DNA of 64,000 nt from Scyliorhinus canicula. Lineage: Eukaryota. The notes beneath the pieces were generated by a model. The model made no database searches. It was not told the DNA's origin and saw only the letters and a list, made by a program, of their open reading frames with translations. Of the stretch, positions 2,241 to 46,028 are shown piece after piece; position 1 is the first letter of the stretch; each line of letters starts with the position of its first letter. The stretch is taken from assembly GCF_902713615.1 (NCBI RefSeq), contig NC_052161.1, positions 86,716,236 to 86,780,235 on the forward strand, in the 5' to 3' direction. A program made the position numbers and the translations under genes.

Positions 2241-2308
2241 TTTCACTTCCTGCACCAAGTTTGCAAACAATGGCAGTTACCTTCGGTAAATCGTGAAAGG
2301 AATTCCCC
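2241..2308 (-). promoter_or_regulatory. Candidate immune enhancer island: Ets-IRF composite (GGAAGTGAAA) plus NF-kB site (GGGGAATTCC)
   Basis: Exact consensus matches at 2241-2250 and 2299-2308 in ~150 bp of unique sequence between two satellites. Motif-level evidence only. Confidence 0.3.
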
Positions 2309-2334
2309 CACAGTTTACACACAGCTCAAAACCC

Positions 2335-2673
2335 CCTAGATTCCAGTTTGTAACTCACTCCTGGGTATCTGTTATTCTATATATAAACCACCCCAAACCC
2401 CTCGATTAGATTCCAGTCTGTAACTCACTCCTGGGTATCTGTTATTCTATATATAAACCACCCCAAACCCCTCGATTAGATTCCAGTCTGTAACTCACTC
2501 CCGGGTATCTGTTATTCTATATATAAACCACCCCAAACCCCTCGATTAGATTCCAGTCTGTAACTCACTCCCGGGTATCTGTTATTCTATATATAAACCA
2601 CCCCAAACCCCTCGATTAGATTCCAGTCTGTAACTCACTCCCGGATGTCTGTTATTCTATATATAAACCACCC
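2335..2673. repeat. 70-bp satellite, block 1
   Basis: Unit taactcactcccgggtatctgttattctatatataaaccaccccaaacccctcgattagattccagtctg, period 70 (2351, 2421). Confidence 0.95.
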
Positions 2674-5600
2674 TGTTGTGATAACCACTGTAGATATGCA
2701 TACTTGCAATAGGGGGAAAGTCAGGGAACCAAGAGGTGAAGGAATCAGTGGGAAGCGTAGCTGCTTAGGATTACAAAAAATCACGAAAAGACAGAGCTCA
2801 GGAGAGGTTACGATAGTCCCCATCTCACAAAATATGACACAGTGTATGGAAAGGCTCAGTAAACCAAGGTCCACCACACTAAGAAAACAAAAAGGGACAG
2901 TCAATAGGGAATTAAAGGTGCTATATTTAAATGCCCGCAGTGTACGGAACAAGGTAGATGAACTTGTGGCCCAGATTGTGACTGGCAGGTATGATGTGGT
3001 AGGCATCACAGAGACGTGGTTGCAGGGGGTTCAGGACTGGCAGTTAAACATCCAGGTATTTACAACCTATCGAAAAGACAGAGAGGTGGGTAGAGGGGGC
3101 GGGGTTGCCTTGTTAATTTGAAATTAAATTAAATCAATAGCACTAAACGACATAGGGTCAGACGATGTGGAGTCTGTGTGGGTAGAGTTGAGGAACCACA
3201 AAGGCAAAAAACCATAATGGGAGTTATGTACAGGCCTCCTGACAGTGGTCAGGACCAGGGGCACAAAATGCACCACAAAATAGAAAGGGCATGTCAGAAA
3301 GGCAAGGTCACAGTGATCATGGGGGACTTCAATATGCAGGTGGACTGGGTAAATAATGTTGCCAGTGGACCCAAAGAAAGGGAATTCATTGAATGTTTAC
3401 AGGATGGCTTTTTGGAACAGCTTGTGATGGAGCCCACGAGGGAACAGGCTATTCTGGACTTAGTGTTATGTAATGAGCCAGAATTGATAAAAGATCTTAA
3501 AGTAAGGGAACACTTAGGAAGCAGTGATCATAATATGGTAGAATTCAGTCTGCAATTTGAAAGAAGGAAGGTAGAATCAGATGTAAAGGTTTTACAGTTA
3601 AATAAAGGTAATTACAGGCGCATGAGGGAGGAACTGACGAAAATCGACTGGAAGCAGAGCCTAGTGGGAAAGACAGTAGAACAGCAATGGCAGGAGTTTC
3701 TGGGAGTAATTGAGGACACAGTGCAGAGGTTCATCACAAAGAAAAGAAAGGTTATCAGAGGGAGGATTAGGCAGCCATGGCTGACAAAGGAAGTCAGGAA
3801 ATGCATCAAGGCAAAAGAGAGAGCCTATAATGTGGCAAAGAGTAGTGGGAAGTCAGAAGATTGGGAAGGCTACAAAAACAAACAGAGGATAACAAAGAGA
3901 GAAATAAGGAAGGAGAGGATCAAATATGAAGGTAGGCTAGCCAGTAACATTAGGAATGATAGTAAAAGTTTCTTTAAATACATTAAAAACAAACGGGAGG
4001 CAAAAGTAGACATTGGGCCGCTCCAAAATAACGCTGGTAATCTAGTGATGGGAGACAAGGAAATAGCTGAGGAACTTAATAAGTACTTTGCGTCAGTCTT
4101 CACAGTAGAAGACATGAGTAATATCCCAACAATTCAGGAAAGTCAGGGGGCAGAGTTGAATATGGTTGCCATCACAAAGGAGAAAGTGCTAGAGAAACTA
4201 AAAGGTCTGAAAATTGATAAATCTCCGGGCCCAGATGGGCTACATCCTAGAGTTCTAAAGGAGATAACTGAAGAAGTAGTGGAGGCGTTAGTTACGATCT
4301 TTCAAAAGTCACTGGAATCAGGGAAAGTCCCAGAGGATTGGAAAATTGCTGTTGTAACCCCCCTGTTCAAGAAGGGAACAAGAAAAAAGATGGAAAATTA
4401 TAGGCCAATTAGCCTAACCTCGGTTGTTGGCAAAATTCTAGAATCCATCGTTAAGGATGAGATTTCTAAATTCTTGGAAGTGCAGGGTCGGATTAGGACA
4501 AGTCAGCATGGATCTAGTAAGGGGAGGTCGTGCCTGACAAACCTGTTAGAGTTCTTTGAAGAGATAACAAATAGGTTAGACCAAGGAGAGCCAATGGATG
4601 TTATCTATCTTGACTTCCAAAAGGCCTTTGACAAGGTGCCTCACGGGAGACTGCTGAGTAAAATAAGGGCCCATGGTATTCGAGGCAAGGTACTAACATG
4701 GATTGACGATTGGCTGTCAGACAGAAGGCAGAGAGTTGGGATAAAAGGTTCTTTTTTGGAATGGCAACCGGTGACAAGTGGTGTCCCGCAGGGTTCAGTG
4801 TTGGGGCCACAGCTGTTCTCTTTATATATTAACGATCTAGATGACGGGACTGGGGGCATTCTGGCCAAGTTTGCCGATGATACAAAGATAGGTGGAGGGG
4901 CAGGTAGTATTGAGGAGGTGGGGAGACTGCAGAAAGATTTAGGCAGTTTAGGAGAATGGTCCAAGAAGTGGCTGATGAAATTCAACGTGGGCAAGTGCGA
5001 GGTCTTGCACTTTGGAAAAAAGAATAGAGGCATGGACTATTTTCTAAACTGTGACAAAATTCATAATGCTAAAGTGCAAAGGGACTTGGGAGTCCTAGTC
5101 CAGGATTCTCTAAAGGTAAACTTGCAGGTTGAGTCCGTAATTAAGAAAGCAAATGTAATGTTGTCATTTATCTCAAGAGGCTTGGAATATAAAAGCAGGG
5201 ATGTACTTCTGAGGCTTTATAAAGCACTAGTTAGGCCCCATTTAGAATACTGTGAGCAATTTTGGGCCCCACACCTCAGGAAGGACATACTGGCACTGGA
5301 GCGGGTCCAGCGGAGATTCACACGGATGATCCCAGGAATGGTAGGCCTAACATACGATGAACGTCTGAGGATTGTGGGATTATATTCATTGGAGTTTAGG
5401 AGGTTGAGGGGAGATCTAATAGAAACTTACAAGGTAATGAATGGCTTTGATAGGATGGACGTAAGGAAGTTGTTTCCATTAGCAGGGGAGACTAGGACGC
5501 GGGGGCACAGCCTTAGAATAAAAGGGAGTCACTTTAGAACAGAGATGAGGAGAAATTTCTTCAGCCAGAGAGTGGTAGGTCTGTGGAATTCATTGCCACA

Positions 5601-6024
5601 GAGGGCGGTGGAGGCTGGGACGTTGAGTGTCTTTTAGACAGAAATTGATAAATTCTTGATTTCTCGAGGAATTAAGGGCTGTGGTGAGAGAGCGGGTAAA
5701 TGGAGTTGAAATCAACCATGATTGAATGGTGGAGTGGGCTCGATGGGCCGAATGGCCTTACTTCCGCTCCTATGTCTTATGGTCTTATGGGATGTATGGC
5801 TGTACCTGTAATACAGGTTCCTCCGGTAAGCCCCTGCCGGCTAGCTCCGCCAACAGGGAGCTTGCGTATAAATGTACGAGTGAGTCACTCAGACTCTAGT
5901 CTTCAGTTGCAGCCGGAGGAATAGCATCACACAGCAATAAAGCCCCTATTGTACTTGTCTCTCGTCTTTGAGTATAATTGTTAGCGCCACAATTTATTGT
6001 TGTGTGATGCTATTCCTCCGGCTG
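2674..6024 (+). mobile_element. Gypsy LTR (A' subfamily) split by a CR1 insertion: 2674-2717 and 5789-5991, followed by a 32-nt inverted copy (5993-6024)
   Basis: Both pieces align to the LTR at 9306-9550 (TGT.GTGA.ATAACCACTGTAG...GGGGGA|GGGATGTATG...AATAAA...GCGCCACA). GGGA is duplicated at the CR1 junctions. Confidence 0.85.
2718..5788 (+). mobile_element. CR1 LINE with near-complete ORF2 (EN+RT), inactivated
   Basis: YLNARS..GITETW endonuclease, 819-aa ORF 3178-5637 with QGSVLGP and KFADDTK RT motifs, TCTTATGG-type tail. Two in-frame stops at ~3119-3127 and a frameshift at ~3210. Confidence 0.95.
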
Positions 6025-9000
6025 AATCCTCGATTAGATTCCAGTCTGTAACTCACTCCCGGGTATCTGTTATTCTATACATAAACCACCCAAAACCCCT
6101 CGATTAGATTCCAGTCTGTAACTCACTCCCGGGTATCTGTTATTCTATACATAAACCACCCAAAACCCCTCGATTAGATTCCAGACTGTAACTCACTCTC
6201 GGGTATCTGTTATCCTGTATATTAATCATCCCGAACACCTCGATTAGATTCCAGATCAGTGTTCTTCAATGTCGAGGTGGGTGTCGAGAGGGTCGTGGAG
6301 CCGTTGTCCGCGGCACTCCCGATAGCACAAATCCCGCACAGCAACCGGCTTTTCATAACGCATGCATGATGATTGGCGCACATGCGCATTCCGCGAACAT
6401 GTCAAAAAGAAATTTGCCCGCATTGCGCATGCGTGCACGATGATCGCCGCGCATACGCAAATGTGGCCGCTATTTTTTTAGTCGGTTGCAGCTTTTGTTT
6501 TACAAGAGCTGCAGTGGTTTTTATTCATTTATTTTATTCACTTAATTTTTATTTTTTTCATTTATATTATTCATTTTATTTTTTTTACAAGTTCTGGGGA
6601 ATTTATTCGTTTTTATCATTTATTTTATTCAATTTTTTAACAAGTTCGGGGGGGTTTTATTCGCTTTTTTCATTTATTTAACTCATTTTATTTTTAATTT
6701 TATCTTTACAAGTTCGGGGGGGGGGGGGGGGGGGGGTTATTTGATAAACTTTTACAGGATCAAAATGCAGAACTTTGGACAGATGGAGACTCCATAATCT
6801 CCGACACCGAAAGCTTCACCTTCATCCAACAGGTTCCATTGGAGGAGCGTGTACGAGGGCCAAAGGGACCCAAAACTATTTCCTCCATTTTTGTCAGCAG
6901 CAAACAAGGTAAGAGAAAATGGTGGGTCGCGCAGGTCGGCAGGCGTGGGTCGCGCAGGTCGGCCGGCGTGGGTCGCGCAGGTCAGCAGGCGTGGATTGCG
7001 CAGGTCGGCAGGCGTGGGTCGCGCAGGTCGGCAGGCGTGGGTCGCGCAGGTCGGCCGGCGTGGGTCGCGAAGGACGACCGGGTTGGGTCCCGAAGGTTGG
7101 CCGGTTGGTAAACATGGGTCCCAGGAAAAAAAGTTTGAAGAACACTGTTGCAGATTGCAATTCACTCCCGGGTGTCGATAATTCTTTAAATAAACAACCC
7201 CGAACAGCACGATTAGATTCCAGTCTGTAACTTACTCCCGGGTACCTGTTATTCTGTATATAAACCACCCTGAACCCCTCGATTAGATTCCAGTCTGTAA
7301 CTCACTCCCGGGTATCTGTTATTCTGTATATAAACCACCCTGAACCCCTCGATTAGATTCCATCTGTAACTCACTCCCGGGTACCTTTTATTCTGTATAT
7401 AAACCACCCTGAACCCCTCGATTAGATTCCATCTGTAACTCACTCCCGGGTATCTGTTATTCTACATATAAACCACCCCAACCCCTCGATTAGATTCCAG
7501 TCTGTAACTCACTCCCGGGTATCTGTTATTCTTTATATAAACCACCCTGAACCCCTCGATTAGATTCCAGTCTGTAACTCACACCCCGGTATCTGTTATT
7601 CTATATATAAACCACCCCGAATCCCTCGATTAGTTTCCATCTGGAACTCACTACCGGGAAACCACCTCAAACCCCTCACTAAGATTCCATCTGTAGCTCA
7701 CTCCCGGTATCTGATATTCTATATATAACCCACCCTGAACCCCTTGATTAGATTCCAGACTGTAACTCACTCCCGGGTATCTGTTATTCTATATATAAAC
7801 CACCCCAACCTCCTCGATTAGATTCCAGTCTGTAACTCACTCCCGGGTATCTGTTATTCTATATATAAACCACCCTGAACCCCTCGATTAGATTCCAGTC
7901 TGTAACTCACTCCCGGGTATCTGTTATTCTTTATATAAACCATCCGAACCCCTCGATTGGATTCCAGTCTGTAATTCACACCCCGGTATCTGTTATTCTA
8001 TATATAAACCACCCCGAATCCCTCGATTAGATTCCATCTGGAACTCACTACCGGGAAACCACCTCAAACCCCTCACTAAGATTCCATCTGTAGCTCACTC
8101 CCGGTATCTGATATTCTATATATAACCCACCCTGAACCCCTTGATTAGATTCCAGACTGTAACTCACTCCCGGGTATCTGTTATTCTATATATAAACCAC
8201 CCCAACCCCCTCGATTAGATTCCAGTCTGTAACTCACTCCCGGGTATCTGTTATTCTATATATAAACCACCCTGAACCCCTCGATTAGATTCCAGTCTGT
8301 AACTCACTCCCGGGTATCTGTTATTCTATATATAAACCATCCCGAACACCTCGATTAGATTCCAGTCTGTAACTCACTCCCGGGTATCTGTTATTCTTTA
8401 TATAAACCATCCGAACCCCTCGATTGGATTCCAGTCTGTAACTCACTCCCGGGTATCTGTTATTCTATATATAAACCACCCTGAACCCCTCGATTAGATT
8501 CCAGTCTGTAACTCACTCACGGGTAGCTGTTATTCTATATATAAACCACCCTGAACCCCTCGATTAGTTTCCAATGTGTAACTCATTACCGGGTATCTGT
8601 TATTCTATATATAAACCACCCTGAACCCAGCGATTAGATTCCAGTCTGAACTCACTCCCGGGTATCTGTTATTCTATATATAAACCACCCTGAACCCCTC
8701 GATTAGATTCCAGTCTGTAACTCACTCCCGGGTATCTGTTATTCTATATATAAACTACCCCGAACCCCTCGATTTGATTCCAGTCTGTAACTCACTCCCG
8801 GGTATGTTATTCTTTTTATAAACCACCCCTTACCCCTCAATTACATTCTAGTCTGTAACTCACTCCGGGTATCTGTTATTCTATATATAACCCACCCTGA
8901 ACCCCTCCATTAGATTCCAGTCTGTAACTCACTCCCATGTATCTGTTATTCTATATATAAACCCCCCCCTAATCACTCGATTTGATTCCAGTCTGTAACT

Positions 9001-9305
9001 CACTCCCGGGCATGTTATTCTTTTTATAAACCACCCCTTACCCCTCAATTACATTCTAGTCTGTAACTCACTCCGGGTATCTGTTATTCTATATATAACC
9101 CACCCTGAACCCCTCCATTAGATTCCAGTCTGTAACTCACTCCCGGGTATCTGTTATTCTATATATAACCCACCCTGAACCCCTCCATTAGATTCCAGTC
9201 TGTAACTCACTCCCATGTATCTGTTATTCTCTATATAAACCCCCCCCGAATCACTCGATTAGATTCCAGTCTGAACTCACTCCCGGGTATCTGTTATTCC
9301 ATATA
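6025..9305. repeat. 70-bp satellite, blocks 2-3 (6025-6256 and 7148-9305), interrupted by the hAT MITE
   Basis: Same 70-bp unit, with phase continuous across the insertions. Confidence 0.95.
6257..7147. mobile_element. Non-autonomous hAT (Charlie-like) DNA transposon
   Basis: 13-bp TIRs CAGTGTTCTTCAA / TTGAAGAACACTG, 8-bp TSD ttccagat/ttgcagat, GC-rich subterminal GGGTCGCG repeats (6920-7075), no transposase. Confidence 0.85.
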
Positions 9306-12300
9306 TGTGGTGAGATAACCACTGTAGTTATGTGTACTGCAGTAGGGGGATGTATGCCTGTACCTGTAATACAGGTTCCTCCGGTCAGCCCCTGCCGGCT
9401 AGCTCCGCCCACAGGGAGCTTGTGTATAAATATGTATGAGAGCTGCTCAGACCCTCAGTCTATAGTTGCGGATGGAGGGACAACAGCGTACAGCAATAAA
9501 GCCTCTATTGTACTAGTCTCTCGGCTTTGAGTATAATTGTTAGCGCCACAATTTATTGCTGTACGATTTCCCAGTCACCATGGACATCAGAGTCAAGCCT
9601 GACCGTCTGCAGCTGGATCCACATTCGCCTCACGCCAGAAAAGACTTTGATCACTGGCTCGCAGTCTTAGAGGCCTACATCTCTTCAGCACACCCTCCCC
9701 CGACGGAGGCTCAGAAAAAGCAACTCCTGTACTCCAGACTTAGCTCCAGCGTCTTTCCGCTCATTCGAGATGCGACCGACTACACCGCAGCTATGGAACT
9801 GCTCAAGGAGAACTATGCACCATCGACGAACACCCTGTTTGCGAGGCATCAACTTTCTACTCGCGTCCAGCAGCCGGGTGAGTCGATTGAGGACTTCTGG
9901 AGGGCCCTTATACCTCTGGTACGAGACTGTGACTGCCGGGCCCTCACAGCCACGGAACATTCTGACTTACTCATGCACGATGCCTTCGTTACAGGCATTG
10001 CTTCGGACCCCATCCGGCAACGACTGCTGGAAGGGGTCGCCCCCGACCTCGCGGCCGCAAAGGCCCTGGCGCTCTCCATGACAGCCGCCTCCCGTAGTGC
10101 GCACACTTACTCCGCTAGCCACTCGGCCCACCCGTCCTACCCCTCGTGGACCCCGCAAACGGCTCCCCAGGCCCATCCGTCCCAACCCTCGTGGACCCCG
10201 CAAACGGCCCCCCCAGCAGCCGCCCCCGCGCACTATGCCTGCGCTTCCCGCCGCACCGCACCCCCTGGGGGGTCCCCACTGTTACTTCTGTGGCCAACAG
10301 AAGCACCCTCGCCAACGCTGCCCGGCCCGCACAGCGACCTGCAAAGCTTGTGGAAAGAAAGGCCACTTTGCAGCGGTGTGTCAGTCCCGGACGGTCGCCG
10401 CTATCGCGCCGCCGGTCCCCACGCCTCAGCCGCTCCCTCAATGGGCCCCGCCGTCCGCTTCCCCCGACCCCACGTGCAATCAGTGGGCGCCGCCATCTTT
10501 TGCCGCCCCCGCCACGTGCGCCCCATGGGCGCCGCCATCTTCATCCACCACAGCCATGTGCGTTCCATGGGCGCCGCCATTTTGTTCCGACCCCATAACG
10601 TGCGCTCCATGGACGCCGCCATTTTACCCACAGGTACTGCGGATGCCGCCATCTCGTCTCCAGGGGCCGCCATCACGGGACACGGGTCGCTACCGCTCCT
10701 CGTCGGACTCATCTGACTCAACCGCCGATCAAACACTGCTCGCCTCCGTTACGCTCGACCAGTCCCGTCCTCGCAACCTGGCACCCTCTTCCACATCGGT
10801 GCTGGTCAACGGCCATGTGACCTCCTGCCTCATCGACTCCGGGAGCACCGAGAGCTTCGTCCACCCGGACACGGTAAGGCGCTATTCCCTTGCGGTACAT
10901 CCCGCCGACCGGCAGATCTCCCTTGCCTCCGGTTCCCACTCTGTCCCGATCCGGGGTTTCTGCCTGGTTAAACTCACTGCACAGGGTGTGGAATTCGACC
11001 GTTTCCGTCTGTACATTCTCCCCGACCTCTGCACTTCACTCCTACTAGGCCTGGATTTCCAGTGCAATCTCCAGAGCCTCACCCTCAAATTCGGTGGACC
11101 CCTACCTCCCCTCACCGTTTGCGGCCTCGCGACCCTCAAGGTCGAGCCCCCCTCCCTCTTTGCCAATCTGACTGTGGATTGCAAGCCCGTCGCCACCAGG
11201 AGCAGACGGTACAGCACCCAGGACAAGGCCTTCATCAGGTCCGAAGTCCAGCGGCTGCTTCGGGAGGGTATCATCGAGGCCAGCAACAGCCCTTGGAGAG
11301 CCCAGGTGGTAGTGGTTAAGACCGGGGAGAAGCACAGGATGGTCGTGGACTACAGCCAGACCATCAACCGGTACACGCAGCTCGACGCGTACCCCCTCCC
11401 CCGCATTTCTGATATGGTCAATCAGATTGCACAGTACCGGGTCTTCTCTACTATTGACCTGAAATCCGCCTACCACCAGCTCCCCATCCGTAAATCGGAC
11501 CGTCCCTACACTGCCTTTGAGGCGGACGGTCGTCTGTACCAATTTCTGAGGGTTCCCTTCGGCGTCACGAATGGGGTCTCGGTCTTTCAGCGAGAAATGG
11601 ACCGAATGGTTGACCGGTACGGATTGCAGGCCACCTTCCCGTACCTCGACAATGTCACCATCTGCGGCCATGACCAGCAGGACCATGATGCCAACCTTTA
11701 TAAATTCCTCCACACCGCATCTCTCCTTAATCTCACGTACAACAAGGAGAAATGCATGTTCCGCACAGACCGCTTAGCCATCCTTGGCTACGTAGTCCAA
11801 AACGGACTACTGGGGCCCGATCCCGACCGCATGCGCCCCCTCATGGAGCTCCCAATTACCCACTGCCCCAAGGCCCTCAAACGCTGCCTTGGGTTTTTCT
11901 CTTATTACGCCCAGTGGGTCCCGCAATACGCAGACAAGGCCCGGCCATTTATCCAGTCCACACATTTTCCCCTCTCGGCCGAGGCACAACAGGCCTTCGC
12001 CTGCATTCGATCTGACATAGCCAGGGCGGGGATGCACGCCGTAGATGAGACTCTGCCTTTCCAAGTAGAGAGCGACGCTTCAGATGTCGCCCTTGCCGCC
12101 ACGCTGAATCAGGCCGGCAGACCCGTGGCATTCTTTTCACGCACCCTCCACGCCTCCGAAATTCGGCATTCCTCTGTCGAAAAGGAAGCCCAGGCAATCG
12201 TTGAAGCGGTGCGGCACTGGAGGCATTACCTGGCCGGCAGGAGATTCACTCTCCTCACTGACCAACGGTCGGTAGCCTTCATGTTCAACAACACGCAGCG

Positions 12301-13926
12301 GGACAAGATCAAGAATGACAAAATCTTGTGGTGGAGAATCGAGCTCTCCACCTTTAACTACGAGACCTTGTATCGCCCCGGCAAGCTCAACGAGCCCCCA
12401 GACGCCCTCTCCCGAGGTACATGTGCCAGTGCACAAGTGAACCAGCTCCGTGCCTTGCACGACAGCCTTTGCCATCCGGGGGTCACTCGCTTGTACCATC
12501 TGATCAAAGCCCGCAATCTGCCCTACTCCGTCGAGGAAGTACGGACAGTCACCAGAGACTGCCAGATCTGTGCGGAGTGCAAGCCGCACTTCTACCGGCC
12601 AGATCGCGCGCGCCTGGTGAAAGCATCCCGCCCCTTTGAACGCCTCAGCGTGGACTTCAAAGGGCCCCTTCCCTCTACCGACCGCAACACCTACATCCTT
12701 AGTGTGGTCGATGAATTTTCTAGGTTCCCCTTTGCCATCCCATGCCCAGATATGACGTCTGCCACCGTCATCAAGGTCCTGGATTCCATTTTCGCCCTGT
12801 TCGGTTTCCCCGACTATATCCACAGTGACAGGGGATCCTCATTCATGAGCGATCAGCTGCGTCAATTCCTGCTCAGCAGGGACATCGCCTCCAGCAGGAC
12901 GACCAGCTACAACCCCCGGGGAAACGGGCAGGTAGAGAGGGAGAACGGGACGGTATGGAGGGCCGTCCAGCTGGCCCTACGGTCCAGGAACCTCCCAGCC
13001 GCTCGCTGGCAGCAGGTCCTCCCTGACGCGCTCCATTCCATTCGGTCGCTACTGTGCACCGCAACTAACAGTACACCCCATGAACGTGTTTTTGCCTTCC
13101 CTGGGAAGTCCACATCCGGAGTGTCGCTCCCGACTTGGCTCACGACTCCGGGCCCAGTCCTTCTCCGTAGGCATGTACGGCACCACAAGGCGGAACCCCT
13201 GGTGGACAAAGTACGCCTTCTCCACGCCAACCCTCAGTATGCCTACGTGGAGTTCCCCGACGGCCGCCAGGACACAGTCTCGCTCCGGGACCTGGCTCCC
13301 TCAGGTGCCGATCCCATGCCCACACCCCTTCCTGCACCAACCCCAGCGCCCCCCCTATTCGTCCCCATCAGGTCCATCCCTCATCCCCCTGCCCACCCTG
13401 GAGAACATGGAAGATTTCGGCTTGCTCTCGGAGTCATCCCGCCAGCAGCCAGCACCAACACCGCCAGCACCTGCACCATCGGGGCCATCACCGCCTGTGC
13501 CGACGTCACCACCACAGCTACGCCGATCACAGCGGAACGTCCGACCACCGATTCGGCTCAACCTGTAACCTGCTAACCGGATGGACTCTTGATTTTCCTT
13601 GTTGGACCCTCTTGTAAATCGCATCCTTTGTATTAGAGTTACATGTCACCCCCGCCGGACTCATTTTTTACAGGGGGTGAATGTGGTGAGATAACCACTG
13701 TAGTTATGTGTACTGCAGTAGGGGGATGTATGCCTGTACCTGTAATACAGGTTCCTCCGGTCAGCCCCTGCCGGCTAGCTCCGCCCACAGGGAGCTTGTG
13801 TATAAATATGTATGAGAGCTGCTCAGACCCTCAGTCTACAGTTGCGGATGGAGGGACAACATCGTACAGCAATAAAGCCTCTATTGTACTAGTCTCTCGG
13901 CTTAGAGTATAATTGTTAGCGCCACA
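9306..13926 (+). mobile_element. Full-length Ty3/Gypsy LTR retrotransposon (element A), young
   Basis: 245-bp LTRs at 9306-9550 and 13682-13926 differing at ~3 sites, 5-bp TSD ATATA, PPT ACAGGGGGTGAA, order gag-PR-RT-RH-IN. Confidence 0.97.
9580..13576 (+). pseudogene. gag-pol polyprotein of element A, with two apparent frameshifts
   Basis: ATG at 9580. Double zinc knuckle CYFCGQQKHPRQRCP/CKACGKKGHFAAVC, protease LIDSGS, RT YLDN, RNase H DASD, IN HPG..C..C and DFKGP/DRG/GQVER. Frameshifts near 10270 (G run) and in the C-terminal linker at ~13380; the terminal LRRSQR..RPP.RLNL motif is in the shifted frame. Confidence 0.9.
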
Positions 13927-14130
13927 ATATATAAACCACCCCGAACCCCTCGATTAGATTCCTGTCTGTAACTCACTCCCGGGTATCTGTTATTATATAT
14001 ATAAACCACCCCAACCCCCTCGATTAGATTCCAGTCTGTAACTCACTCCCGGGTATCTGTTAGTCTATATATAAACCCCCCCCCCCCGAATCACTCGATT
14101 AGATTCCATCTGTATCTCACTCCCGGGTAT
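13927..14130. repeat. 70-bp satellite, block 4
   Basis: The unit resumes after the ATATA TSD. Confidence 0.95.
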
Positions 14131-18744: not shown

Positions 18745-21700
18745 TGTGGTGAATGTAACTTGGTAATTCACTCTGTATTTACCAATACTATTGTAAGCGC
18801 AGTATCGTTATCCGATCACTAGGGGGAGTAGCTCTGAGAATGCTCAGGAGTTTGTACAGGGCTCCACCCTTGGCTCCGCCCACGACTCCTCCCCCTAGAC
18901 TTCTGTATAAATAACCGTTTCCAGAGCCAGCCTGAGTTCATCGTGAGTTCAACGGGTAACAGGCTGGCTCTGAAGTAAGTAGATTAATACCACTGTTCAT
19001 ATCTGAAAGCATGTGTCTCGTGAATTGATGGTTCCATCAATTTAATCTACTTAAGAACAGTCAGGATCGATCATGGAATCAGCCCTCAAGCCTGGACGCC
19101 TGGAACCCACAGGATGCAGAGGCAAAATAAATCTTCTCCCACTGGCTGCGGTGTTTTAAGGCCTACCTGGCAGAAGCGAGCACAGCCGAAACAACTGAGG
19201 AACAGAAGTTAAGTCTACTGCACGCGAGGGTGAGCCACAGAATCTCTACGCAAATAAACTCTGCCGGTTCATATACTGCAGCGCTAGCGATACTCGATAA
19301 GATGTATGTAAGGCCCAGTAATGAAGTTTACGCACGCCAGGTGTTCACGACTCGCCGCCAGCGGCCTACAGAATCACTCGTCGAATTTCTAAGAGAGCTC
19401 AATAATTTATCAAATGACTGCAACTATCAAGCGGTTACATAGGGAACTTGCTGTACGCGACGTTATTGTAGTGGGCCTCAGGTCTAACTATGTGCGCCAA
19501 AGACTGCTGGAAAAGGGGGCCCAAGACTTAGAAACAACTGCGGAAATTGCTACCACGATGGAGGTCTCTTTCCGCAGCCTCACCTCGTTCCCCGCGGACC
19601 CCACGACCCAATCATGGGCCCCCGACCAGCAACTCCCCCAGGCCTGTGCCACGCGGCCTCCCAGCCACCATGCTGCCCCAGCCAGCCACTATGCTGCCAC
19701 AGCCTGCCATTTCTGCGGCCAGAATCAGCACCCGTGGCAGCACTGCCCGGCCCGCAATGCGACCTGCAGCAGCTGCGGGCGGAAAGGCCATTACGCAAGA
19801 GTGTGCCTCGCAAATAGGGCCCCAGCTTCCAACTCCCCAGCGGCACGAAGTAATCGCTCCCCACACTGGCAGGCCGCGGGGCCCGAAACGCTGCGGCCTA
19901 TGCCCCGACCCCGCCCCCTCCTGCCACGTGCGATCCATGGGGGCCGCCATCTTGGAAAACCTCCACCATGCGGCTGGCCACGTGTGACTCATGGGGGCCG
20001 CCATCTTGGACGCCATCTTCCTCGCCGCCCGCCACGTGCGATCCACGGGTCTGACCTGCATCTCCATGCTCGGACAACTCATCGGAAGAGTACGAATACG
20101 AACTGAGAGGTCAGTCATCACGGGGCCACTCCAGCACAGCTGATCGAGCCGCCGACTACCCGCAACTCAGCGCAGTCACCCTGGACCAATCGCGCCTGAA
20201 GCATCTGCGAAACTCGATGGCGATGGTCCAAATCAACGGGTACAGCACGCCATGCCTTTTCGACTCCGGGGGTACTGAGAGCTTCATACACCCAGATCTG
20301 GTAAGACGCTGTTCGCTCCCCGTTTTCCCCGTGCGGCAAACTATCTCTCTCGCTTCAGGCTCCCACTCTGTCCAGATCCAGGGGTGCACCGCCGCGACAC
20401 TCACAATCCGAGGCGCTAGCTATGCAAAATGTCAACTCTACGTTTTGCCCGAACTCTGCGCCCCACTCTTATTTGGCCTAGATTTTCAATGTAACCTTAA
20501 GAGCCTCACCCTCAGCTTCGGCGGGCCCCTGCCCCCACTCACTATCTGCAGCCTCGCTACGCTGCGAATCTCCCCCCCCCCTCCACTCTTCGCCAATCTC
20601 ACAAAGGACTGCAAACCCGTAGCCACTCGTAGCAGGCGATACAGCCTGCAGGATAGGGTATTTATCAGATCGGAGGTCCGAAGGCTTCTCAGTGAGGGGA
20701 TTATAGAGGCCAGCAATAGTCCCTGGAGAGCTCAGGTTGTGGTCGTTAAGACGGGGGAAAAATTCCGCATGGTTGTCGACTATAGTCAAACCATAAATAG
20801 ATTTACGCTCCTCGACGCGTATCCCCTCCCCAGGATTGCAGATGTGGTAAATCAGATCACCCAGTACCGGCTCTTCTCCACGGTGGATCTGAAGTCTGCA
20901 TACCACCAGCTCCCAATCCGCCCGGAGGACCGCCACTATACGGCATTCGAGGCCGATGGCCGCCTCTTCCATTTCCTCCGGGTCCCCTTCGGCGTCACTA
21001 ATGGGGTCTCGGTGTTCTAACGAGCAATGGACCGAATGGTGGACCAGTACGGGCTGCGGGCCACGTTTCCGTACTTGGACAATGTCACCATCTGCAGCTA
21101 TGACCAGCAGGACCACGACGCCAACCTCCACCGTTTTCTCCAGACGGCACAGAAACTGAATCTCACGTACAACAAGGAGAAATGCGTTTTCCGCACAACC
21201 AGATTAGCCATCCTCGGCTATGTCGTGGAAAACGGAGTCCTGGGCCCCGACCCGGACCGTATGCGCCCCCTCTTAGAACTCCCTCTCCCTCATTGCCCCA
21301 AGGCCCTCAAACGGTGCTTGGGCTTCTTCTCCTACTACGCCCAGTGGGTCCCTCAATATGCGGACAAAGCCCGTCCACTCTTTAAGGCCACACGATTTCC
21401 CCTGTCAGCTGAGGCACGACAGGCCTTCAACTACATCAAGGAGGACATCGCCAAAGCGGCCACGCGGGCGGTGGATGAATCCACTCCATTCCAGATTGAG
21501 AGCGACGCCTCAGAGGTAGCTCTAGCAGCCACACTAAATCAGGCAGGGAGACCAGTCGCATTTTTCTCCCAAACCCTCTCCGCTTCAGAACTCCGACACT
21601 CCTCAGTCGAGAAAGAAGCACAAGCCATTGTGGAGGCTGTTCGTCACTGGAGGCACTACCTCGCAGGTAGGAGGTTCACCCTCATCACCGACCAAAGATC

Positions 21701-23373
21701 GGTTGCCTTTATGTTTGATAACTCGTAAAGGGGCAAAATAAAAATGATAAGATTCTTCGGTGGAGGATCGAACTCTCCACCTATAATGACGATATTAAGT
21801 ATCGACCCGGGAAGCTCAACGAGCCTCCGGATGCTCTATCCCGTGGGACATGCGCCAGCGCGCAGATTGACCGATTGAAAGTCATCCACAACGGCCTCTG
21901 CCACCCGGGGGTCACCCGGCTCGCCCACTACATCAGGGCCCGAAACCTGCCTTTCTCCAAAGAGGAGGTAAAAGCGGTCATCAGGGACTGCCCGATCTGT
22001 GCGGAGTGCAAAACGCACTTCTATAGACCAGACAGGGCCCAACTGGTCAAGGCTTCTAGGCCCTTTGAACGTCTCGTGATTGATTTCAAAGGGCCACTCC
22101 CCTCAACTAACAAGAACGTTTACTTTCTAAACGTCGTAGATGAGTACTCCCGTTTCCCATTTGCTATCCCGCGCCCCGACATGACCTCCCACACAGTCAT
22201 TAGGGCCCTGCATAGTTTCTTCACCCTGTTTGGTTTCCCCAGCTACGTACACAGCGACCGAGGTTCGTCCTTCATGAGCGACGAGCTGCGTCAGTACCTG
22301 CTCGACAAGGGCATTGCCTCGAGCAGGACTACCAGCTACAACCCCAGGGGGAACGGGCAGGTGGAGAGGGAGAACGCGATGGTCTGGAAGACCGTCCTAC
22401 TGACTCTCCGGTCTAGAAAGCTCCAAGTCTCCCAGTGGCAGGAAGTCCTCCCAGACACGCTCCACGCTATTAGGTCCCTTTTGTGCACAGCGACCAATCA
22501 GACCCCTCACGAGAGGCTCTTCATTTTTTCCAGGGGCACTACCACGGGTGTCTCACTTCCGGCGTGGCTGAGGACACCGGGCCGGGTACTCCTGAGGAAA
22601 CACGTCAGGGCGCACAAAACCGACCCCCTTGTAGAGAAGGTGCGCCTGCTCCACTCCAACCCCCAGTACGCCTTCGTCGAGTTCCCTGACGGCCGTCAGG
22701 ACACGGTATCCCTCCGGGATCTGGCACCCGCCGGATCCAGCGCCCCCTCTACCCCCACAGAAGGTCCCCTCACCCTACACCCCATGCTGCCGTCCCCTCA
22801 CGCTCCTGAGCCCACGAGCTCGCTCCACCAGTTCCGTGCACCCGCGCCGGCCAGCCCCCAGCGCTCCCCAGTCCCCGGTCGAACCAGAAGAGTATGAAGC
22901 TCGGACACAACCCTCCCTGGAGTCCGCCATTGCACCCCAGCACACAACACACATCCAGCCACCGCAAGAGGCTACAACCCCGGTGCTCCGCAGATCACAG
23001 CGGACAGTTCAACCACCGGACAGACTTACTTTGCAGACAACCACCTCCGCCGGACTTGATTTTTTTGCAGGAGGTGAATGTGGTGAATGTAACTTGGTAA
23101 TTCACCCTGTATTTACCAATACTATTGTAAGCGCAGTAGTGTTATCCGACCACCAGGGGGAGTAGCTCTGGGAATGCTCAGGAGTTTGTACAGGGCTCCA
23201 CCCTTGGCTCAGCCCACGACTCCTCCCCCTAGACTGCTGTATAAATAACCGTGTCCAGAGCCAGCCTGAGTTCATCGTGAGTTCAACGGGTAACAGGCTG
23301 GCTCTGAAGTAAGTAGATTAAAACCACTGTTCATATCTGAAAGCACGTGTCTCATGAATTGATGGTTCCATAA
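18745..23373 (+). mobile_element. Full-length degenerate Gypsy element B1 inserted in Gypsy D RT
   Basis: 295-bp LTRs at 18745-19039 and 23079-23373, 5-bp TSD GCGGG, gag ATG at 19073, pol broken by stops (e.g. 21018, 21726) and frameshifts. Confidence 0.95.
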
Positions 23374-24709
23374 GCGGGGAAGTGGGTACGCATCGAGTTG
23401 CGTAAAGCGGTTTATGGTCTGGCTATAATCCACTACCATTCGTTGCTTTTCCCCGGAGTGGACTACCAATACTTGAGCCCTCCAAGGCTGTTGCTGGCCT
23501 CAATGACCCCCTCTTTTAGTAGCCGCTGAACCTCTGACTTGATAAAAGTCATGTCTTGGGTACTGTACCGGCGACTCCTGGTGGCGACGGGCTTACAGTC
23601 GGGAGTGAGGGTCGCGAAGAGGGGGGGTGGCGCAACTTTGAGTGACGCCAGGCTGCATACTGTGAGTGGGGGCAGGGGTCCACCGAACTTCAGTGTCAGG
23701 CTCCGGTGGCTGCACTGAAAGTCCAGACCGAGCAGCAGGGGGGGGTGCAGAGGTGAGGGAGGATGTAGAGTTTAAAACGGGTGTATTCAGCGCCTTGAAT
23801 TGCGAGGTCAGCGACACAATACCCCGTGATTTGAACCGAATGGGACCCCGAAGCGAGGGCGATAGTTTGGGCGGCGGGGAGGATGTGCAGGGAGCAGCGC
23901 CTTACTGTGTCTGGATGGATAAAGCTCTCCGTGCTCCCGGAGTTGAATAGGCAGGAAGTGTCGTGGCCGTTGATTCGCACCCGCATCATTGAGTTCCACA
24001 GGTGCTTTGGCCGCGATTGATCGACCATGATCGCTCCTAGTTGCGGGTAGTCAGAGTCCTTGGTTAAGTCGGACTCACAAAATGGCCACCTGGAGTCACA
24101 AAATGGCCGCCACCGTCGGTCGCACGTGTTGGGGTTCGAAGATGGCCGCCGTCAAGATGGCCGCTCCCATGACTCGCACGAGGTTGATGACGTGTCGGAA
24201 GTGGGCGTGTCCGGCCACCGCGCGGCCGCGTTGTGATGCCTGTGAGGCCGGGAGCTTGATTTCTGGGCCCGGTGAGGATTTTGTTTGCGGCCTTTGGGCC
24301 CAGCCAGGCAGACTTTAGCGATGTGCCCTTTCTTCCCACAGAGCTGGCCGTGCAACGTTGACGTGGGTGCTGGCCTTGCCTACAGAAACAGCATGGGGAA
24401 CCCCCGGAGTGAGCGGATCGGCGTGCGGCGCAGGCCTGTAGCGTGGCCGAGTCTAGAGGGGATCGAGAGGGGTTTGCAAGGTCCGCGGAGTATGTACGGA
24501 GGTTACGGTGGGCCGTTTCTAGGGAAGAGGCGAGCGTTACCGTGCATTCGAGAACCTTTGCCCCGTCTTCTAGGAGCTGCTGCCGGATGTACGAGGACCT
24601 GATACCGGACACAAAGGCATCGCGAATAGGCAAGTTCATGTGGGTTTCTGCCGTCACTGCTTTATGATTGTAGTTCCTGTTTTAATACAAAAGATTGTAG
24701 TTCCCAAAT

Positions 24710-27700
24710 TCTGTAACCTCCTCCAGCCCCTACACCCCTCCCTATCTCTGTAACCTCCTCCAGCCCCTACACCCCTCCCTATCTCTGTAACCTCCTCCAG
24801 CCCTTCACTCCTCCCTATCTCTGTAACCACCTCCAGCCCTACACCCCTCCCTATCTCTGTAACCTCCTCCAGCCCCAACACCCCTCCTTATCTCTGTAAC
24901 CTCCTCCAGCCCCTGCATCCCTCCCTATCTCTGTAACCTCCTCCAGCTCCAAGACCCTCCCTATCTCTGTAACCTCCTCCAGCCCCTACACCCCTCCCTA
25001 TCTCTGTAACCTCCTCCAGCCCCTACACCCCTCCCTATCTCTGTAACCTCCTCCAGCCCTACACCCCTCCCTATCTCTGTAACCACCTCAAGCCCCAACA
25101 CCACTCCCTATCTCTGTAACCTCCTCCACAACCAACACCCCTCCCTATCTCTGTAACCTCCTCCAGCCCTTCACTCCTCCCTATCTCTGTAACCACCTCC
25201 AGCCCTACACCCCTCCCTATCTCTGTAACCTCCTCCAGCCCCAACACCCCTCCCTATCTCTGTAACCTCCTCCAGCCCCTGCATCCCTCCCTATCTCTGT
25301 AACCTCCTCCAGCTCCAAGACCCTCCCTATCTCTGTAACCTCCTCCAACCCCTGCAACCCTCCCTATCTCTGTAACCTCCTCCAGCCCCTACACCCCTCC
25401 CAATCTCTGTAACCTCCTCCAGCCCCTTCACCCCTCCCTATCTCTGTAACCTCCTCCAGCCTCATGACGCTCCCTATCTCTGTAACCTCCCACAGCCCCA
25501 ACGCCCCTCCCTATCTCTGTATCCTCCTCCAGCCCCTATGACCCTCTCTATCTCTGTAACCTCCTCCAGCCCCTATTACCCTCCCTATCTCTGTAACATC
25601 CTCCAGCCCCAACACCCCTCCCTATCACTGTAACCTCCTCCAGCCCCAACACCCCTCCCTATCTCTGTAACCTCCTCCAGCCCCTACACCCCTCCCTATC
25701 TCTGTAACCTCCTCCAGCCCCTACACCCCTCCCTATCACTGTAATGTCCTCCAGTCCCTACACCCCTCCCTATCTCTGTAACCTCCTCCAGCCACATGAC
25801 GCTCCCTATCTCTGTAACCTCCTACAGCCCCAACGCCCTTCCCTATTTCTGTATCCTCCTCCAGACCCTATGACCCTTCCTATCTCTGTAACCTCCTCCA
25901 GCCCCTATTACCCTCCCTATCTCTGTAACATCCTCCAGCCCCAACACCCCTCCCTATCACTGTAACCTCCTCCAGACCCTACACCCCTTACCTATCTCTG
26001 TAACCTCCTAAAGAACCAACACCCCTCCCTATCTCTGTAACCACCTCCAGCCCCTACACCCCTCCCTATACTGTAACCTCCTCCAGCCCCATGACCCTCC
26101 CTATCTCTGTAACCTCCACCAGCCCCTACAGCCCTCGCTATCACTGTAACCTCCTCCAGCCCCGACACCCCTCCCTATCTCTGTAACCTCCTTCAGCCCT
26201 ACACCCCTCCCTATCTCTGTAACCTCCTCCAGCCCCTACACCCCTCCCTATCTCTGTAACCTCCTCCAGCCCTACACCCCTCCCTATCTCTGTAACCTCC
26301 TCCAGCCCTACACCCCTCCCTATCCCTGTAACCTCCTCCAGCCCTACACCCCTCCCTATCTCTGTAACCTCCTCCAGCCCCATGACCCTCCCTATCTCTG
26401 TAACATCCACCAGCCCCTACACCCCTCCCTATCTCTGTATCCTCCTCCAGCCCCTATGACCCTCTCTATCTCTGTAACCTCCTCCAGCCCCTATTACCCT
26501 CCCTATCTCTGTAACATCCTCCAGCCCCAACACCCCTCCCTATCACTGTAACCTCCTCCAGCCCCTATGACCCTTCCTATCTCTGTAAACTCCTCCAGCC
26601 CCTATTACCCTCCCTATCTCTGTAACATCCTCCAGCCCCAACACCCCTCCCTATCACTGTAACCTCCTCCAGACCCTACACCCCTTACCTATCTCTGTAA
26701 CCTCCTAAAGAACCAACACCCCTCCCTATCTCTGTAACCACCTCCAGCCCCTACACCCCTCCCTATACTGTAACCTCCTCCAGCCCCATGACCCTCCCTA
26801 TCTCTGTAACCTCCACCAGCCCCTACAGCCCTCGCTATCACTGTAACCTCCTCCAGCCCCGACACCCCTCCCTATCTCTGTAACCTCCTTCAGCCCTACA
26901 CCCCTCCCTATCTCTGTAACCTCCTCCAGCCCCTACACCCCTCCCTATCTCTGTAACCTCCTCCAGCCCTACACCCCTCCCTATCTCTGTAACCTCCTCC
27001 AGCCCTACACCCCTCCCTATCACTGTAACCTCCTCCAGCCCTACACCCCTCCCTATCTCTGTAACCTCCTCCAGCCCCATGACCCTCCCTATCTCTGTAA
27101 CATCCACCAGCCCCTACACCTCTCCCGATCTCTGTAACCTCCTCCAGCCCCTACACCCCTCCCTATCTCTGTAACCTCCTCCAGCCCTACACCCCTCCCT
27201 ATCTCTGTAACCTCCTCCAGCCCTACACCCCTCCCTATCACTGTAACCTCCTCCAGCCCTACACCCCTCCCTATCTCTGTAACCTCCTCCAGCCCCATGA
27301 CCCTCCCTATCTCTGTAACATCCTCCAGCCCCAACACCCCTCCCTATCACTGTAACCTCCTCCAGACCCTACACCCCTTACCTATCTCTGTAACCTCCTA
27401 AAGAACCAACACCCCTCCCTATCTCTGTAACCATCTCCAGCCCCTACACCCCTCCCTATACTGTAACCTCCTCCAGCCCCATGACCCTCCCTATCTCTGT
27501 AACCTCCACCAGCCCCTACAGCCCTCGCTATCACTGTAACCTCCTCCAGCCCCGACACCCCTCCCTATCTCTGTAACCTCCTTCAGCCCTACACCCCTCC
27601 CTATCTCTGTAACCTCCTCCAGCCCCTACACCCCTCCCTATCTCTGTAACCTCCTCCAGCCCTACACCCCTCCCTATCTCTGTAACCTCCTCCAGCCCTA

Positions 27701-29480
27701 CACCCCTCCCTATCACTGTAACCTCCTCCAGCCCTACACCCCTCCCTATCTCTGTAACCTCCTCCAGCCCCATGACCCTCCCTATCTCTGTAACATCCAC
27801 CAGCCCCTACACCCCTCCCTATCTCTGTAACCTCCTTCAGCCCCTACACCACTCCCTATCTCTGTAACCTCCTCCAGCCCCTACATCCCTCCCTCTCTCT
27901 GTAACCTCCTCCAGCCCTACACCCCTCCCTATCTCTGTAACCTCCTCCAGCCCTACACCCCTCCCTATCTCTGTAACCTCCTCCAGCCCCGACACCCCTC
28001 CCTACTTCTGTAACCTCTTCCAGCCCCATGACCCTCCCTATCACTGTAACCTCCTCCAGCCCCTACAACCCTCCCTATCTCTGTAACCTCCTCCAGCCCC
28101 ATGACCTTCCCTATCTCTGTAACATCCTCCAGCCCCTACACCCCTCCCTATCTCTGTAAACTCCTCCAGCCCCTACACCCTCCCTATCACTGTGACCTCC
28201 TCCAGCCCCATGACCCTCCCTAACTCTGTAACCTCCTCCAGTCCCTACACCACTCCCTATCTCTGTAACCTCCTCCAGCACCTACACCCCTCCCTCTCTC
28301 TGTAACATCCTCCAGCCCAGACACCCCTCCCTATCTCTGTAACCTCCTCCAGCCCCATGACCCTCCCTATCTCTGTAACCTCCTCCAGCCCCATGACCCT
28401 TCCTGTCTCTGTAACCTCCTCCAGCTCCATCACCCTCCCTATCTCTGTAACCTCCAGCTCCATCACCCTCCCTGCCTCTGTAAACTCCTCCTGCCCCATG
28501 ACCCTCCCTATCTCTGTAACGTGCTCCAGCCCCTACACCCCTCGCTATCTCTGTAATCTCCTCCAGCCCTGACACCCCTCCCTATCTCTGTAACCTCCTC
28601 CAGCTCCATGACCCCCCCTATCTCTGTAACCTCCGCCAGCCCCATGACCCTCCCTATCTCTGTAACCTCCTCCAGCCTCTACACCCTCCCTATCTCTGTA
28701 ACCTCCTCCAGCCCTACACCCCTCCCTATCTCTGTAACCTCCTCCAGCCCCTACACCCCTCCCTATCTCTGTAACCTCCTCCAGCCCCTACACCCTCGCT
28801 ATCACTGTAACCTCCTCCAGCCCCTACACCCCTCCCTATCTCTGTAACCTCCTCCAGCCCCTACACCCTCCCTATCACTGTAACCTCCTCCTGCCCCATG
28901 ACCCTCCCTATCTCTGTAACCTCCTCCAGCCCCATGACCCTCCCTATCTCTGTAACCTCCTCCAGTCCCATGACCCTCCCTATCTCTGTAACCTCCTCCA
29001 GCCCCATGACCCTCCCTATCTCTGTAACCTCCTCCAGCCCCATGACCCTCCCTATCTCTGTAACCTCCTCCAGCCCCATGACCCTCCTTATCACTGTAAC
29101 CTCCTCCAACCCCATGACCCTGCCTTATCTCTGTAACCTCCTCCAGCCCCCCACAAATCCATCCCTATCTCTGTAGCGTACTCCAGCTCCCATAGTGCTT
29201 CACAGCACTGCAACCTCCTCCAGGCCTGAAAACCCTGCCTATCTTTGTAACTCCCTACAGCCCCTTACATCCCTCCCTATCACTATAACGTCCCCCAGCC
29301 CTACACACCTTCCTATCTTTGTTATCTTCTCCATCCCTGCCAACCCTCCCTATCTCTACAGCCTCCTCCATACCCGACAATCCTCCTGATCCTTGTAACA
29401 TTCTTCAGCCCCTACACCCCTTCCTATCCCTGCAACCTCCCCCAGCCCTTTCCTATCTCTGCAACCTCCACCAGCCCCTT
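24710..29480. repeat. 37-bp C-rich satellite with ~695-bp higher-order repeats
   Basis: Unit ctctgtaacctcctccagcccctacacccctccctat. Near-identical ORF blocks at 26141, 26838 and 27531. The array decays toward 29480. Confidence 0.95.
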
Positions 29481-33067: not shown

Positions 33068-33489
33068 AAACATTCAAAAGCATTAATTCTTGAGGCCCAC
33101 ACTCGCACATTAAGCTACATTTGATTCCCCTCCAGGTCGGGGATCCATGCTGATCGAAGCGGGTTATCTGTTGCATCATTCCCGTTGTGCACGGGAACTA
33201 AAGAGAGAGCGGGAGCCTTAGAGCACAAAGCGCAAGGCGAGGGCGGAATCCACAAAGGCCACTTTGCATGGCTTGAAAGAAACTCGGAAACCTGAGCCAG
33301 ACGCTGCGGAGACTCATCAGGGGCGACAAACCTCACGAGGAAATGAGTTAAACATCCCAGGAAGATGTCAAACGCACTGTGGGGAAATGGGACGGCGTGA
33401 TGAGGAGGGTGGGGGTGGGGGGGGGGGGGGGGGTGGCGTCGGTCTAGATCGGAGCTCGGGCACAAAACGTGGAGTGGGGATGCCCGGGG

Positions 33490-35000: not shown

Positions 35001-35087
35001 TCCCATGGCGCATCACATGGCGCATCACGTGGTCCGCATGACTAACGTTCGCTTCTGTGGAAGGCGCTTGAGGACGGCCGCACTCCT

Positions 35088-41234: not shown

Positions 41235-41360
41235 CGGTTCCCTTTCCCCTGTGAGGACCGGCCTCTCCGTGGCTGATGGGGGCAGTAACGAGGCAACGGC
41301 GGTAGCGGGCGTTCCGTGCTCGTGTAATCATTGCTGTTGCAAAGTGGCTGGTTCGAGAGT
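41235..41360 (-). CDS. CD4: CD4 cytoplasmic exon 2: LSNQPLCNSNDYTSTERPLPPLPRYCPHQPRRGRSSQGKGN
   Basis: Acceptor cccctctcag|, donor CG|gtgagt, phase 2/2. Contains the CxH motif. Confidence 0.85.
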
Positions 41361-41411
41361 CTGAGAGGGGAACATGAAACAAGTTAATAATTTGTTAAGT
41401 AACAACCCTCA

Positions 41412-42830: not shown

Positions 42831-42907
42831 TTGGAATCAAGTTAAGTGTCTGGTTGGCAGGTTCTGGGTATGGAGGGGTATTTGAGAGATGTTTCAAGGT
42901 AACTCAC

Positions 42908-42960
42908 TGGTGACTGTGCTCCCGGCACAGAGGGTGTCTCAATCTCCTCAATGCTCGTCT
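42908..42960 (-). CDS. CD4: CD4 cytoplasmic exon 1: RRALRRLRHPLCREHSH(Q)
   Basis: Acceptor ttctttcctcacag|, donor CA|gtgagt, phase 0/2. Confidence 0.85.
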
Positions 42961-44312: not shown

Positions 44313-44369
44313 CTACACAGAACAGGAAAACGTCAAATAATTCCCAAAATCAGAGACACACTCGCATCT

Positions 44370-46005: not shown

Positions 46006-46028
46006 TGTAGTTTTGTTCTGTATCTTAC

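Follow-up and report, generated by a model that had tools for sequence, protein, structure and literature searches.

The long terminal repeat (LTR) retrotransposon Tf1 primes reverse transcription with its own transcript, the first 11 nt of which pair with the primer-binding site (PBS), after which RNase H cuts between nt 11 and 12 (PMC7175516). Self-priming like that of Tf1 is reported for Tj1 (PMC4600332), and similar self-primers are predicted for the plant Tcn1 and TAR lineages, where a self-primer is annotated if 10 bp or more of the 5' LTR have their complement in sequence that starts 0–5 bp past that LTR (PMC6317226). Self-priming itself is already a known mechanism, one associated for the most part with chromoviruses of the Tf1/sushi group and with a small number of plant lineages. 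Here we analyze a 64,000-nt stretch of the genome of the catshark Scyliorhinus canicula (RefSeq assembly GCF_902713615.1, contig NC_052161.1, positions 86,716,236–86,780,235 of the forward strand; hereafter the window, in whose own coordinates all window positions are given), in which five Ty3/gypsy 5' LTRs, those of elements A, A', B1, B2 and C, are each followed, at the place of a PBS, by an arm that repeats, in inverted orientation, the part of the LTR that leads up to and includes the putative polyadenylation (poly(A)) signal.

An inverted copy of the hexamer segment behind the 5' LTR

In all five window 5' LTRs the complement lies one base past the terminal CA, extends over 12–32 nt and corresponds to an LTR segment that ends in AATAAA or ATTAAA. 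Element A, whose LTR bounds we corrected slightly to 9306–9550 and 13682–13926, has its segment at 9485–9500, a single spacer A at 9551 and its arm at 9552–9567. Within its own 5' LTR 14 of 14 positions pair (9487–9500 with 9552–9565), and the arm matches both the segment copy of the 3' LTR (13861–13876) and the family consensus at 16 of 16; a T at 9486 in 59 of 61 RNA reads (run X23) indicates that the G of A's 5' LTR is private to that copy. B1 (5' LTR 18745–19039, spacer 19040, segment 18976–18988, arm 19041–19053) pairs over 12 nt (18976–18987 with 19042–19053), the hexamer of its own 5' LTR being mutated to ATTAAT, and the arm matches the segment of its 3' LTR (23310–23322, within 23079–23372) at 13 of 13. 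Pairing is likewise complete in B2 (13/13, 48464–48476 with 48529–48541; 5' LTR 48221–48527, spacer 48528, 3' LTR from 52538) and in C, which lies on the minus strand (14/14, 32408–32421 with 32343–32356; 5' LTR 32628–32358, spacer 32357, 3' LTR 29848–29578). The complement of A' is the longest, at 32 nt with a single mismatch (5910–5941 with 5993–6024). A repeat finder returned this pairing as the sole inverted repeat of at least 12 nt in the LTR–leader region for four of the five cases. Throughout the window the spacer is a single A, the hexamer ends 50–51 nt from the LTR end, and 24–34 nt separate the LTR from the gag ATG. Upon re-reading of the sequence, every coordinate of the five segment–arm pairs listed in a preliminary description of the window was borne out, as were its hexamer spacing and its short leader to the gag ATG.

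That description covered the window's own subfamilies; the layout is real, and its distribution is far wider, reaching several phyla. We took the DNA around gag and pol homologues and examined the LTR–leader junction of each. A search with Gag only gave four homologues, all from catsharks (S. canicula and S. torazame), the other hosts being reached only via pol. The same layout was present in 11 further elements, with pol identity down to 44%: in the two catsharks (three further S. canicula/S. torazame families and a second element in locus L001), in the rays Narcine (L004) and Hypanus (L005), in the sea anemone Actinostola (L006), in a contig of the Trichuris suis assembly (L007), in another eukaryotic contig (L008) and in two more distant ones (L009 and L012; 44–45% pol identity). 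Locus L011 (44% identity) was left unscored because its contig ends within the LTR. Altogether 16 elements, drawn from no fewer than six host genomes, have the layout in an identical place.

Among these, 13 elements have a complement of 11–16 bp that begins one base past the CA of the LTR, and L009 and L012 have one of 12 bp after one spacer base, a layout of the kind annotated as a self-primer in plants (PMC6317226). Every member can be read as an LTR ending in CA, one spacer base (A; G in L012), TTT(T)A(A/T)T and then 6–10 further bases complementary to those directly upstream of the LTR hexamer, a pattern that can serve as a rule for recognizing and delimiting such elements. The paired LTR segment ends in AATAAA, ATTAAA or AATAAAA (AATAA in L009), usually with GCC next. 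The distance from hexamer to LTR end is 40–51 nt across members and 23 nt in the Trichuris element, and the leader between LTR and ATG, 18–34 nt across families, is variable apart from the arm. Loss of pairing in young, intact copies had been named in the preliminary description as a finding that would speak against it; a duplex of 15–16 bp is retained in the young copies of L004 and L005, with 100% identical LTRs, and of L008, with 99.6% identical LTRs, and L004 and L008 have an uninterrupted gag-pol open reading frame (ORF).

Co-variation was measured in 12 families, with B counted once. At positions 7–13, next to the hexamer, 80 of 84 possible Watson–Crick pairs are formed with 3–4 pair types per column, compared with 34.5 ± 5.5 for randomly dealt arms (maximum 59 in 20,000 shuffles). 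Positions 1–6 read AATAAA in six families and ATTAAA in the other six, with the arm matching as TTTATT or TTTAAT, and pairing fades beyond position 13–16. The proposed co-variation of the arm with the hexamer segment, in which segment sequences differ and pairing is kept, thus holds in the 12 families and in A', B1, L009 and L012 besides. Only 1 of the 84 pairs at positions 7–13 is G:U, a near-absence that fits templated copying of a primer better than stepwise compensatory change. The duplex forms part of the minimum-energy fold for 11 of 13 leaders; that of A appears in both the minimum-energy and the centroid fold, with a z-score of −2.96 relative to dinucleotide shuffles.

The arm as a probable binding site for a self-primer

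What is directly observed is an arm complementary to the hexamer segment, its precise placement and co-variation, and the lack of an alternative primer site; on the strength of these observations we consider it likely that the arm is the PBS of a self-priming Ty3/gypsy lineage, in one geometry or another. In the genomic RNA, 13–16 nt of the repeat region (R) ending in A(A/U)UAAA would fold back on the arm one base past the unique 5' region (U5). A cut directly behind the hexamer, analogous to the RNase H cut at the end of the Tf1 primer–PBS duplex, would leave a 3'-OH from which the spacer and U5 could be copied; both the cleavage and the enzyme responsible for it are postulated from this analogy. 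Minus-strand strong-stop DNA would then reach from the spacer to the base that follows the hexamer, the homology for first strand transfer would come from the stretch between the hexamer and the poly(A) site, and plus-strand synthesis would copy the primer into DNA, remaking the arm in each cycle.

These elements share with Tf1, Tf2 and Tj1 the lack of a transfer RNA (tRNA) PBS, complementarity between part of their own 5' LTR transcript and the sequence just past U5, and a single gag-pol ORF. However, Tf1 is primed by the 11 nt at the 5' end of its mRNA, whereas the segment considered here ends in the poly(A) hexamer and forms a duplex of 11–16 bp. In the shark and ray elements, moreover, the segment is predicted to lie 28–44 nt inside the RNA. 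The lineage lacks a chromodomain, and its identity to Tf2 across reverse transcriptase and RNase H (RT-RH) is, as a crude guide, 26–27%. The same operational signature applies to the self-primers predicted for sushi-type vertebrate chromoviruses and for the plant Tcn1 and TAR lineages (PMC6317226), which are chromoviruses or Ty1/copia elements, whereas the present lineage is a non-chromoviral one of animals. We found no statement in the open-access literature that the sushi, Tcn1 or TAR primer overlaps the poly(A) signal, nor did we find there a self-primer that ends in a poly(A) hexamer or any self-primer in a non-chromoviral animal lineage, those described being from Tf1/sushi, Tcn1, TAR/Houba and Tj1. 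What appears unreported in the literature searched is the constant coincidence of the proposed primer's 3' end with the poly(A) hexamer, together with, for the shark and ray families, a predicted RNA start 28–44 nt upstream that would make the primer internal.

A hairpin at the end of U5, AATTGAT-N5-ATCAATT (AATTGT/ACAATT in A), spans the LTR end and adjoins the duplex at 9530–9553, 19020–19042 and 48508–48530 and in L001a, L002 and L005. Most shark and ray families have it, whereas L004 (Narcine), L006, L007 and L008 lack it. This stem-loop recalls the U5-IR stem of Rous sarcoma virus and of Tf1, which requires it according to titles cited in PMC4600332 and PMC7175516.

Where such a primer would lie in the RNA depends on the transcription start. 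In the shark and ray families TATAA stands 73–94 nt before the hexamer end, that is ~60–78 nt before the duplex start, and an initiator-like motif follows 29–34 nt past TATA: CCTCAGTCT in A and Hypanus, GTTCAGTTCA in B2, CCATTC in C and L001a and TCATTCC in Narcine. For element A the TATA box TATAAATA (9425) and the initiator-like CCTCAGTCT, together spanning 9425–9461, predict an RNA start at the A at 9457 (TATA+32), 28 nt 5' of the paired segment; the corresponding distance, again from motif spacing, is 41 nt in B2, 31 nt in C and 44 nt in Hypanus. Because this spacing puts the start 28–44 nt upstream, we lean toward an internal primer in the shark families, with a 3' end that would be made by cleavage. 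The TATA boxes at 9425 and 18906 were found where the preliminary description had placed them, and its view that this is not the classic Tf1 geometry stands as an inference drawn from a TATA box, with an initiator-like motif ~31 nt on, that the shark and ray families conserve.

In the classic Tf1 geometry transcription would begin at the first base of the duplex, and the primer would be the first 12–16 nt of the RNA, hexamer included. This sub-variant of self-priming gains some support from invertebrate members, since L009 (LTR ~107 nt) has an AT-rich box ~30 nt before the duplex start and L007 an initiator-like TCAGTC just 7 nt before the duplex, and from the relative L010, which has this layout without a hexamer; it would also avoid the problem that a long primer poses in plus-strand transfer. 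Against it stand the shark and ray TATAA, ~60–78 nt before the duplex start, the motifs TCAGTC, TCAGTT and CCATTC 29–34 nt past TATA, and the complement of A', which at 32 nt is twice the duplex length. We regard the Tf1 geometry as unlikely. In some invertebrate members (L009, L007) transcription could, judging from these motifs, start at or near the duplex.

Several side observations touch on the start and on R. L010 (53–210; 40% pol identity, unrelated Gag N-terminus) contains a 12-nt segment that runs from an initiator-like TCAGTT, 26 nt past TATAAT, and is complementary to a site 2 nt past the LTR, a classic Tf1-type layout without a hexamer that is followed by a 355-nt repetitive leader. 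The cnidarian-type LTRs (L006, 4893–4912; L008, 4896–4912) have GGCCGCCATGTTTTGT in common, 18–30 nt before the paired segment; we take this motif to resemble a YY1-type initiator site and to be a possible start determinant where the TATA box is missing. L012 has an exact 75-nt terminal redundancy (1–75 and 3904–3978), from 16 nt past TATAAT to 22 nt past AATAAAA, which resembles R; the contig could be transcript-derived, or the redundancy could be mere assembler overlap. Finally, a stable hairpin lies between TATA and the self-primer segment, at 18922–18934/18960–18972 in B1 (−30 kcal/mol, z −4.7) and with equivalents in B2, C, L001a, L001b, L002 and L005. Were transcription to start at the initiator, this TATA-proximal hairpin would be confined to the 3' (U3-R) copy within the RNA, shortly before the poly(A) signal; the true start could otherwise lie further upstream.

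Element A' may preserve a by-product of the process. It consists of a complete LTR, the first 44 nt of which (2674–2717) are separated from the remainder (5789–5991) by a later insertion of ~3 kb, followed by the spacer A and the 32-nt complement (5993–6024) of its own R, after which the 70-bp satellite that surrounds it resumes directly and in phase; there is no target duplication. The first 16 nt of the extension are like the arm of A (13/16), whereas the next 15 are unlike the leader of A (1/15) and match the R of A'. Both ends are those expected of plus-strand strong-stop DNA, which makes A', a single case, a candidate for a captured reverse-transcription intermediate with a 3' end copied from its own R. 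Integrase-independent insertion of complementary DNA that keeps the copied PBS is described for Tf1 (PMC11042837). The extension could be either a copy of an RNA primer of at least 30 nt or the product of a DNA 3' end that folded back on R (snap-back) and was extended; the former would support an internal primer, whereas the latter has no bearing on it.

A number of points weigh against self-priming from an internal primer and against its novelty. The start is placed by TATA/initiator spacing alone, and the 5' arm of the TATA-proximal hairpin, which begins 11–18 nt past TATA, sits uneasily with the predicted start. If the primer were ~45 nt long and unpaired in its 5' part, plus-strand strong-stop DNA would end up with a mismatched tail, barring trimming or a second cut, and we know of neither step for a long primer. 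For L007 and L002 the minimum-energy fold holds part of the duplex only. RNA reads were mapped to the whole of A from two raw RNA and two contig runs and then to its 5' LTR and leader from four raw RNA runs; at 1–20x depth, with LTR reads on both strands and from many related families, they displayed no start pile-ups and no poly(A) loose ends. Among sequencing runs described as transcriptomic, a filtered search listed none that was long-read or cap-selected. As for novelty, the literature searched was open-access, and a prior description may exist, for instance in subscription papers or in Repbase, Dfam or GyDB.

Possible masking, structural roles and cellular primers

The paired segments carry only the two canonical hexamers, so that a genuine poly(A) signal situated in R is very likely. 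Since one arm of the stem is not part of the LTR, the 5' end is the only place where the stem could form in cis, which makes 5'-specific masking plausible; that the stem also masks the 5' copy of the poly(A) signal is a conjecture that we advance tentatively. As predicted for the stem here, HIV-1 sequesters AAUAAA in a hairpin close to the 5' terminus of its genomic RNA. The HIV-1 poly(A) hairpin, however, lies wholly within R, forms at both ends and leaves 5' suppression to other cues, whereas here one arm stands outside the LTR, which restricts the stem to the 5' end, and the stem falls on the proposed priming site. It is conceivable, if short of probable, that these elements represent an ancient, metazoan-wide, non-chromoviral clade in which one duplex silences the 5' poly(A) signal and then, after the cut, yields a capped primer of ~30–50 nt. 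Such coupling of silencing and priming, if true, would have a geometry distinct from that of Tf1 and would need an unrecognized limit on how much of the primer is copied.

The stem might instead be a structural element only, masking the promoter-proximal poly(A) signal or serving packaging, dimerization or 5'–3' cyclization with the 3' copy of R, with reverse transcription primed by something else. The confinement of the stem to the 5' end in cis, the restriction to two canonical hexamers that the arm follows faithfully, and the HIV-1 precedent would all suit such a role. Masking, however, needs no arm that starts exactly one base past U5 in every lineage, and we favor priming because the arm is fixed at that position, because we recognize no other candidate primer site, conserved or otherwise, in the 18–34 nt leader, because the near-perfect Watson–Crick pairing is what would be expected if the arm were recopied from the primer, and because the duplex is kept in copies with identical LTRs. 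The scarcity of G:U pairs would be unusual for a stem kept by selection alone, and the A' extension is templated from R. An exclusively structural stem is, in our judgment, improbable, more so than the Tf1 geometry.

It seems to us highly improbable that the arm is a conventional PBS that pairs with a tRNA, a fragment of one or some other small cellular RNA. An A/U-rich RNA end might conceivably pair with the constant TTTA(A/T)T; no actual match was found. Neither TGG nor a conserved tRNA complement is present at the PBS position; the arms differ between families, with the 7–10 nt beside the hexamer being family-specific and always matching the element's own LTR. A tRNA scan (ARAGORN) predicted a single tRNA gene in the window, unrelated to the arm, and Rfam gave only a hairpin-like match at 25 bits against a gathering score of 48, far below threshold, so the lack of a tRNA PBS claimed at the outset stands. 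We dismiss both chance and misplaced LTR boundaries as the source of the inverted repeat: a perfect 13-mer complement at a fixed anchor in a 245-nt LTR has a chance of ~4e-6 per element, and the layout recurs here at one and the same position across the 16 elements.

If the arm is a self-primer-binding site, self-priming would mark a large animal lineage that occurs in both sharks and rays, in a sea anemone and in an assembly from a nematode, and in which pol is 44–60% identical across phyla. Annotation pipelines that seek tRNA primer sites would score these elements as having none. The overlap of the primer 3' end with the hexamer further suggests a link between avoiding an RNA cut at the 5' repeat and starting reverse transcription, which is of interest for both the replication and the annotation of retroelements.

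Coding capacity, affiliation and genomic setting

Element A, with LTRs of 245 nt that are 98.8% identical, is flanked by the 5-bp target duplication ATATA (9301–9305 and 13927–13931) and has a polypurine tract, ACAGGGGGTGAA (13670–13681), that abuts the 3' LTR. Its gag-pol region (9580–13576) encodes two CCHC knuckles, protease, reverse transcriptase, RNase H and integrase (IN) in two overlapping frames (9580–10716 and 10097–13576). Relatives have one continuous gag-pol ORF, 1457 aa long in Narcine (L004), and we therefore read the split coding region of A as damage: A is probably a damaged copy with a frameshift despite its similar LTRs, and RNA contigs are one base shorter at 10267. Shared protein features are a Gag N-terminus of the form M-D/E-x-x-L-K/R-P-x-x-L, two CCHC knuckles and a C-terminal tail of RPPDRL type. 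This tail takes the place of a chromodomain, for which (PF00385) no match was obtained in four members at E values up to 1, in agreement with the preliminary description.

Structure-guided comparison on Swiss-Prot models, a crude guide, gave RT-RH identities of 30–31% to 17.6 and opus and 26–27% to Tf2 and Ty3. Judged by these sequence comparisons, with no chromodomain and an RT-RH not closest to Tf2, the clade is by descent not a Tf1/sushi chromovirus. Its size, short LTRs, single ORF and metazoan spread would presumably be compatible with membership in the Mag clade (Mag/SURL/Jule). CsRn1 membership was considered for the LTR start, which at TGTGGTG fits the CsRN1 integrase motif TGTGGYG (PMC3601003), and both groups are metazoan and without a chromodomain. 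What defines CsRn1-type elements, however, is a PBS for tRNA-Trp, a Gag with a CHCC motif and target duplications of 4 bp (PMC2582038). The assignment was rejected on the self-complementary arm in place of a tRNA PBS, the two CX2CX4HX4C knuckles of Gag and the 5-bp duplications.

Across RT-RH-IN, catshark elements are ~60% identical to those of the sea anemone and of many further contigs and 57% identical to that of the Trichuris suis contig. This cross-phylum pol identity is unusually high and could reflect strong constraint, horizontal transfer or assembly contamination.

The preliminary description had contrasted the elements above with Mag-like elements of the same window that have TGGT-type primer sites; these sites are present at 40737 (TGGTACCATG...) and 61864 (TGGTGCCAGG...), but no intact pol ORF lies nearby by which to classify the elements. 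Most of the window is tandem satellite with periods of 50, 70, 37, 69, 18 and 29 bp, into which the LTR elements are inserted. Its stretches lie at 592–2106, 2291–9372, 24617–28500, 33355–35070, 41283–46122, 53829–56100 and 59581–61022, and satellite transcripts predominate among the RNA reads flanking element A.

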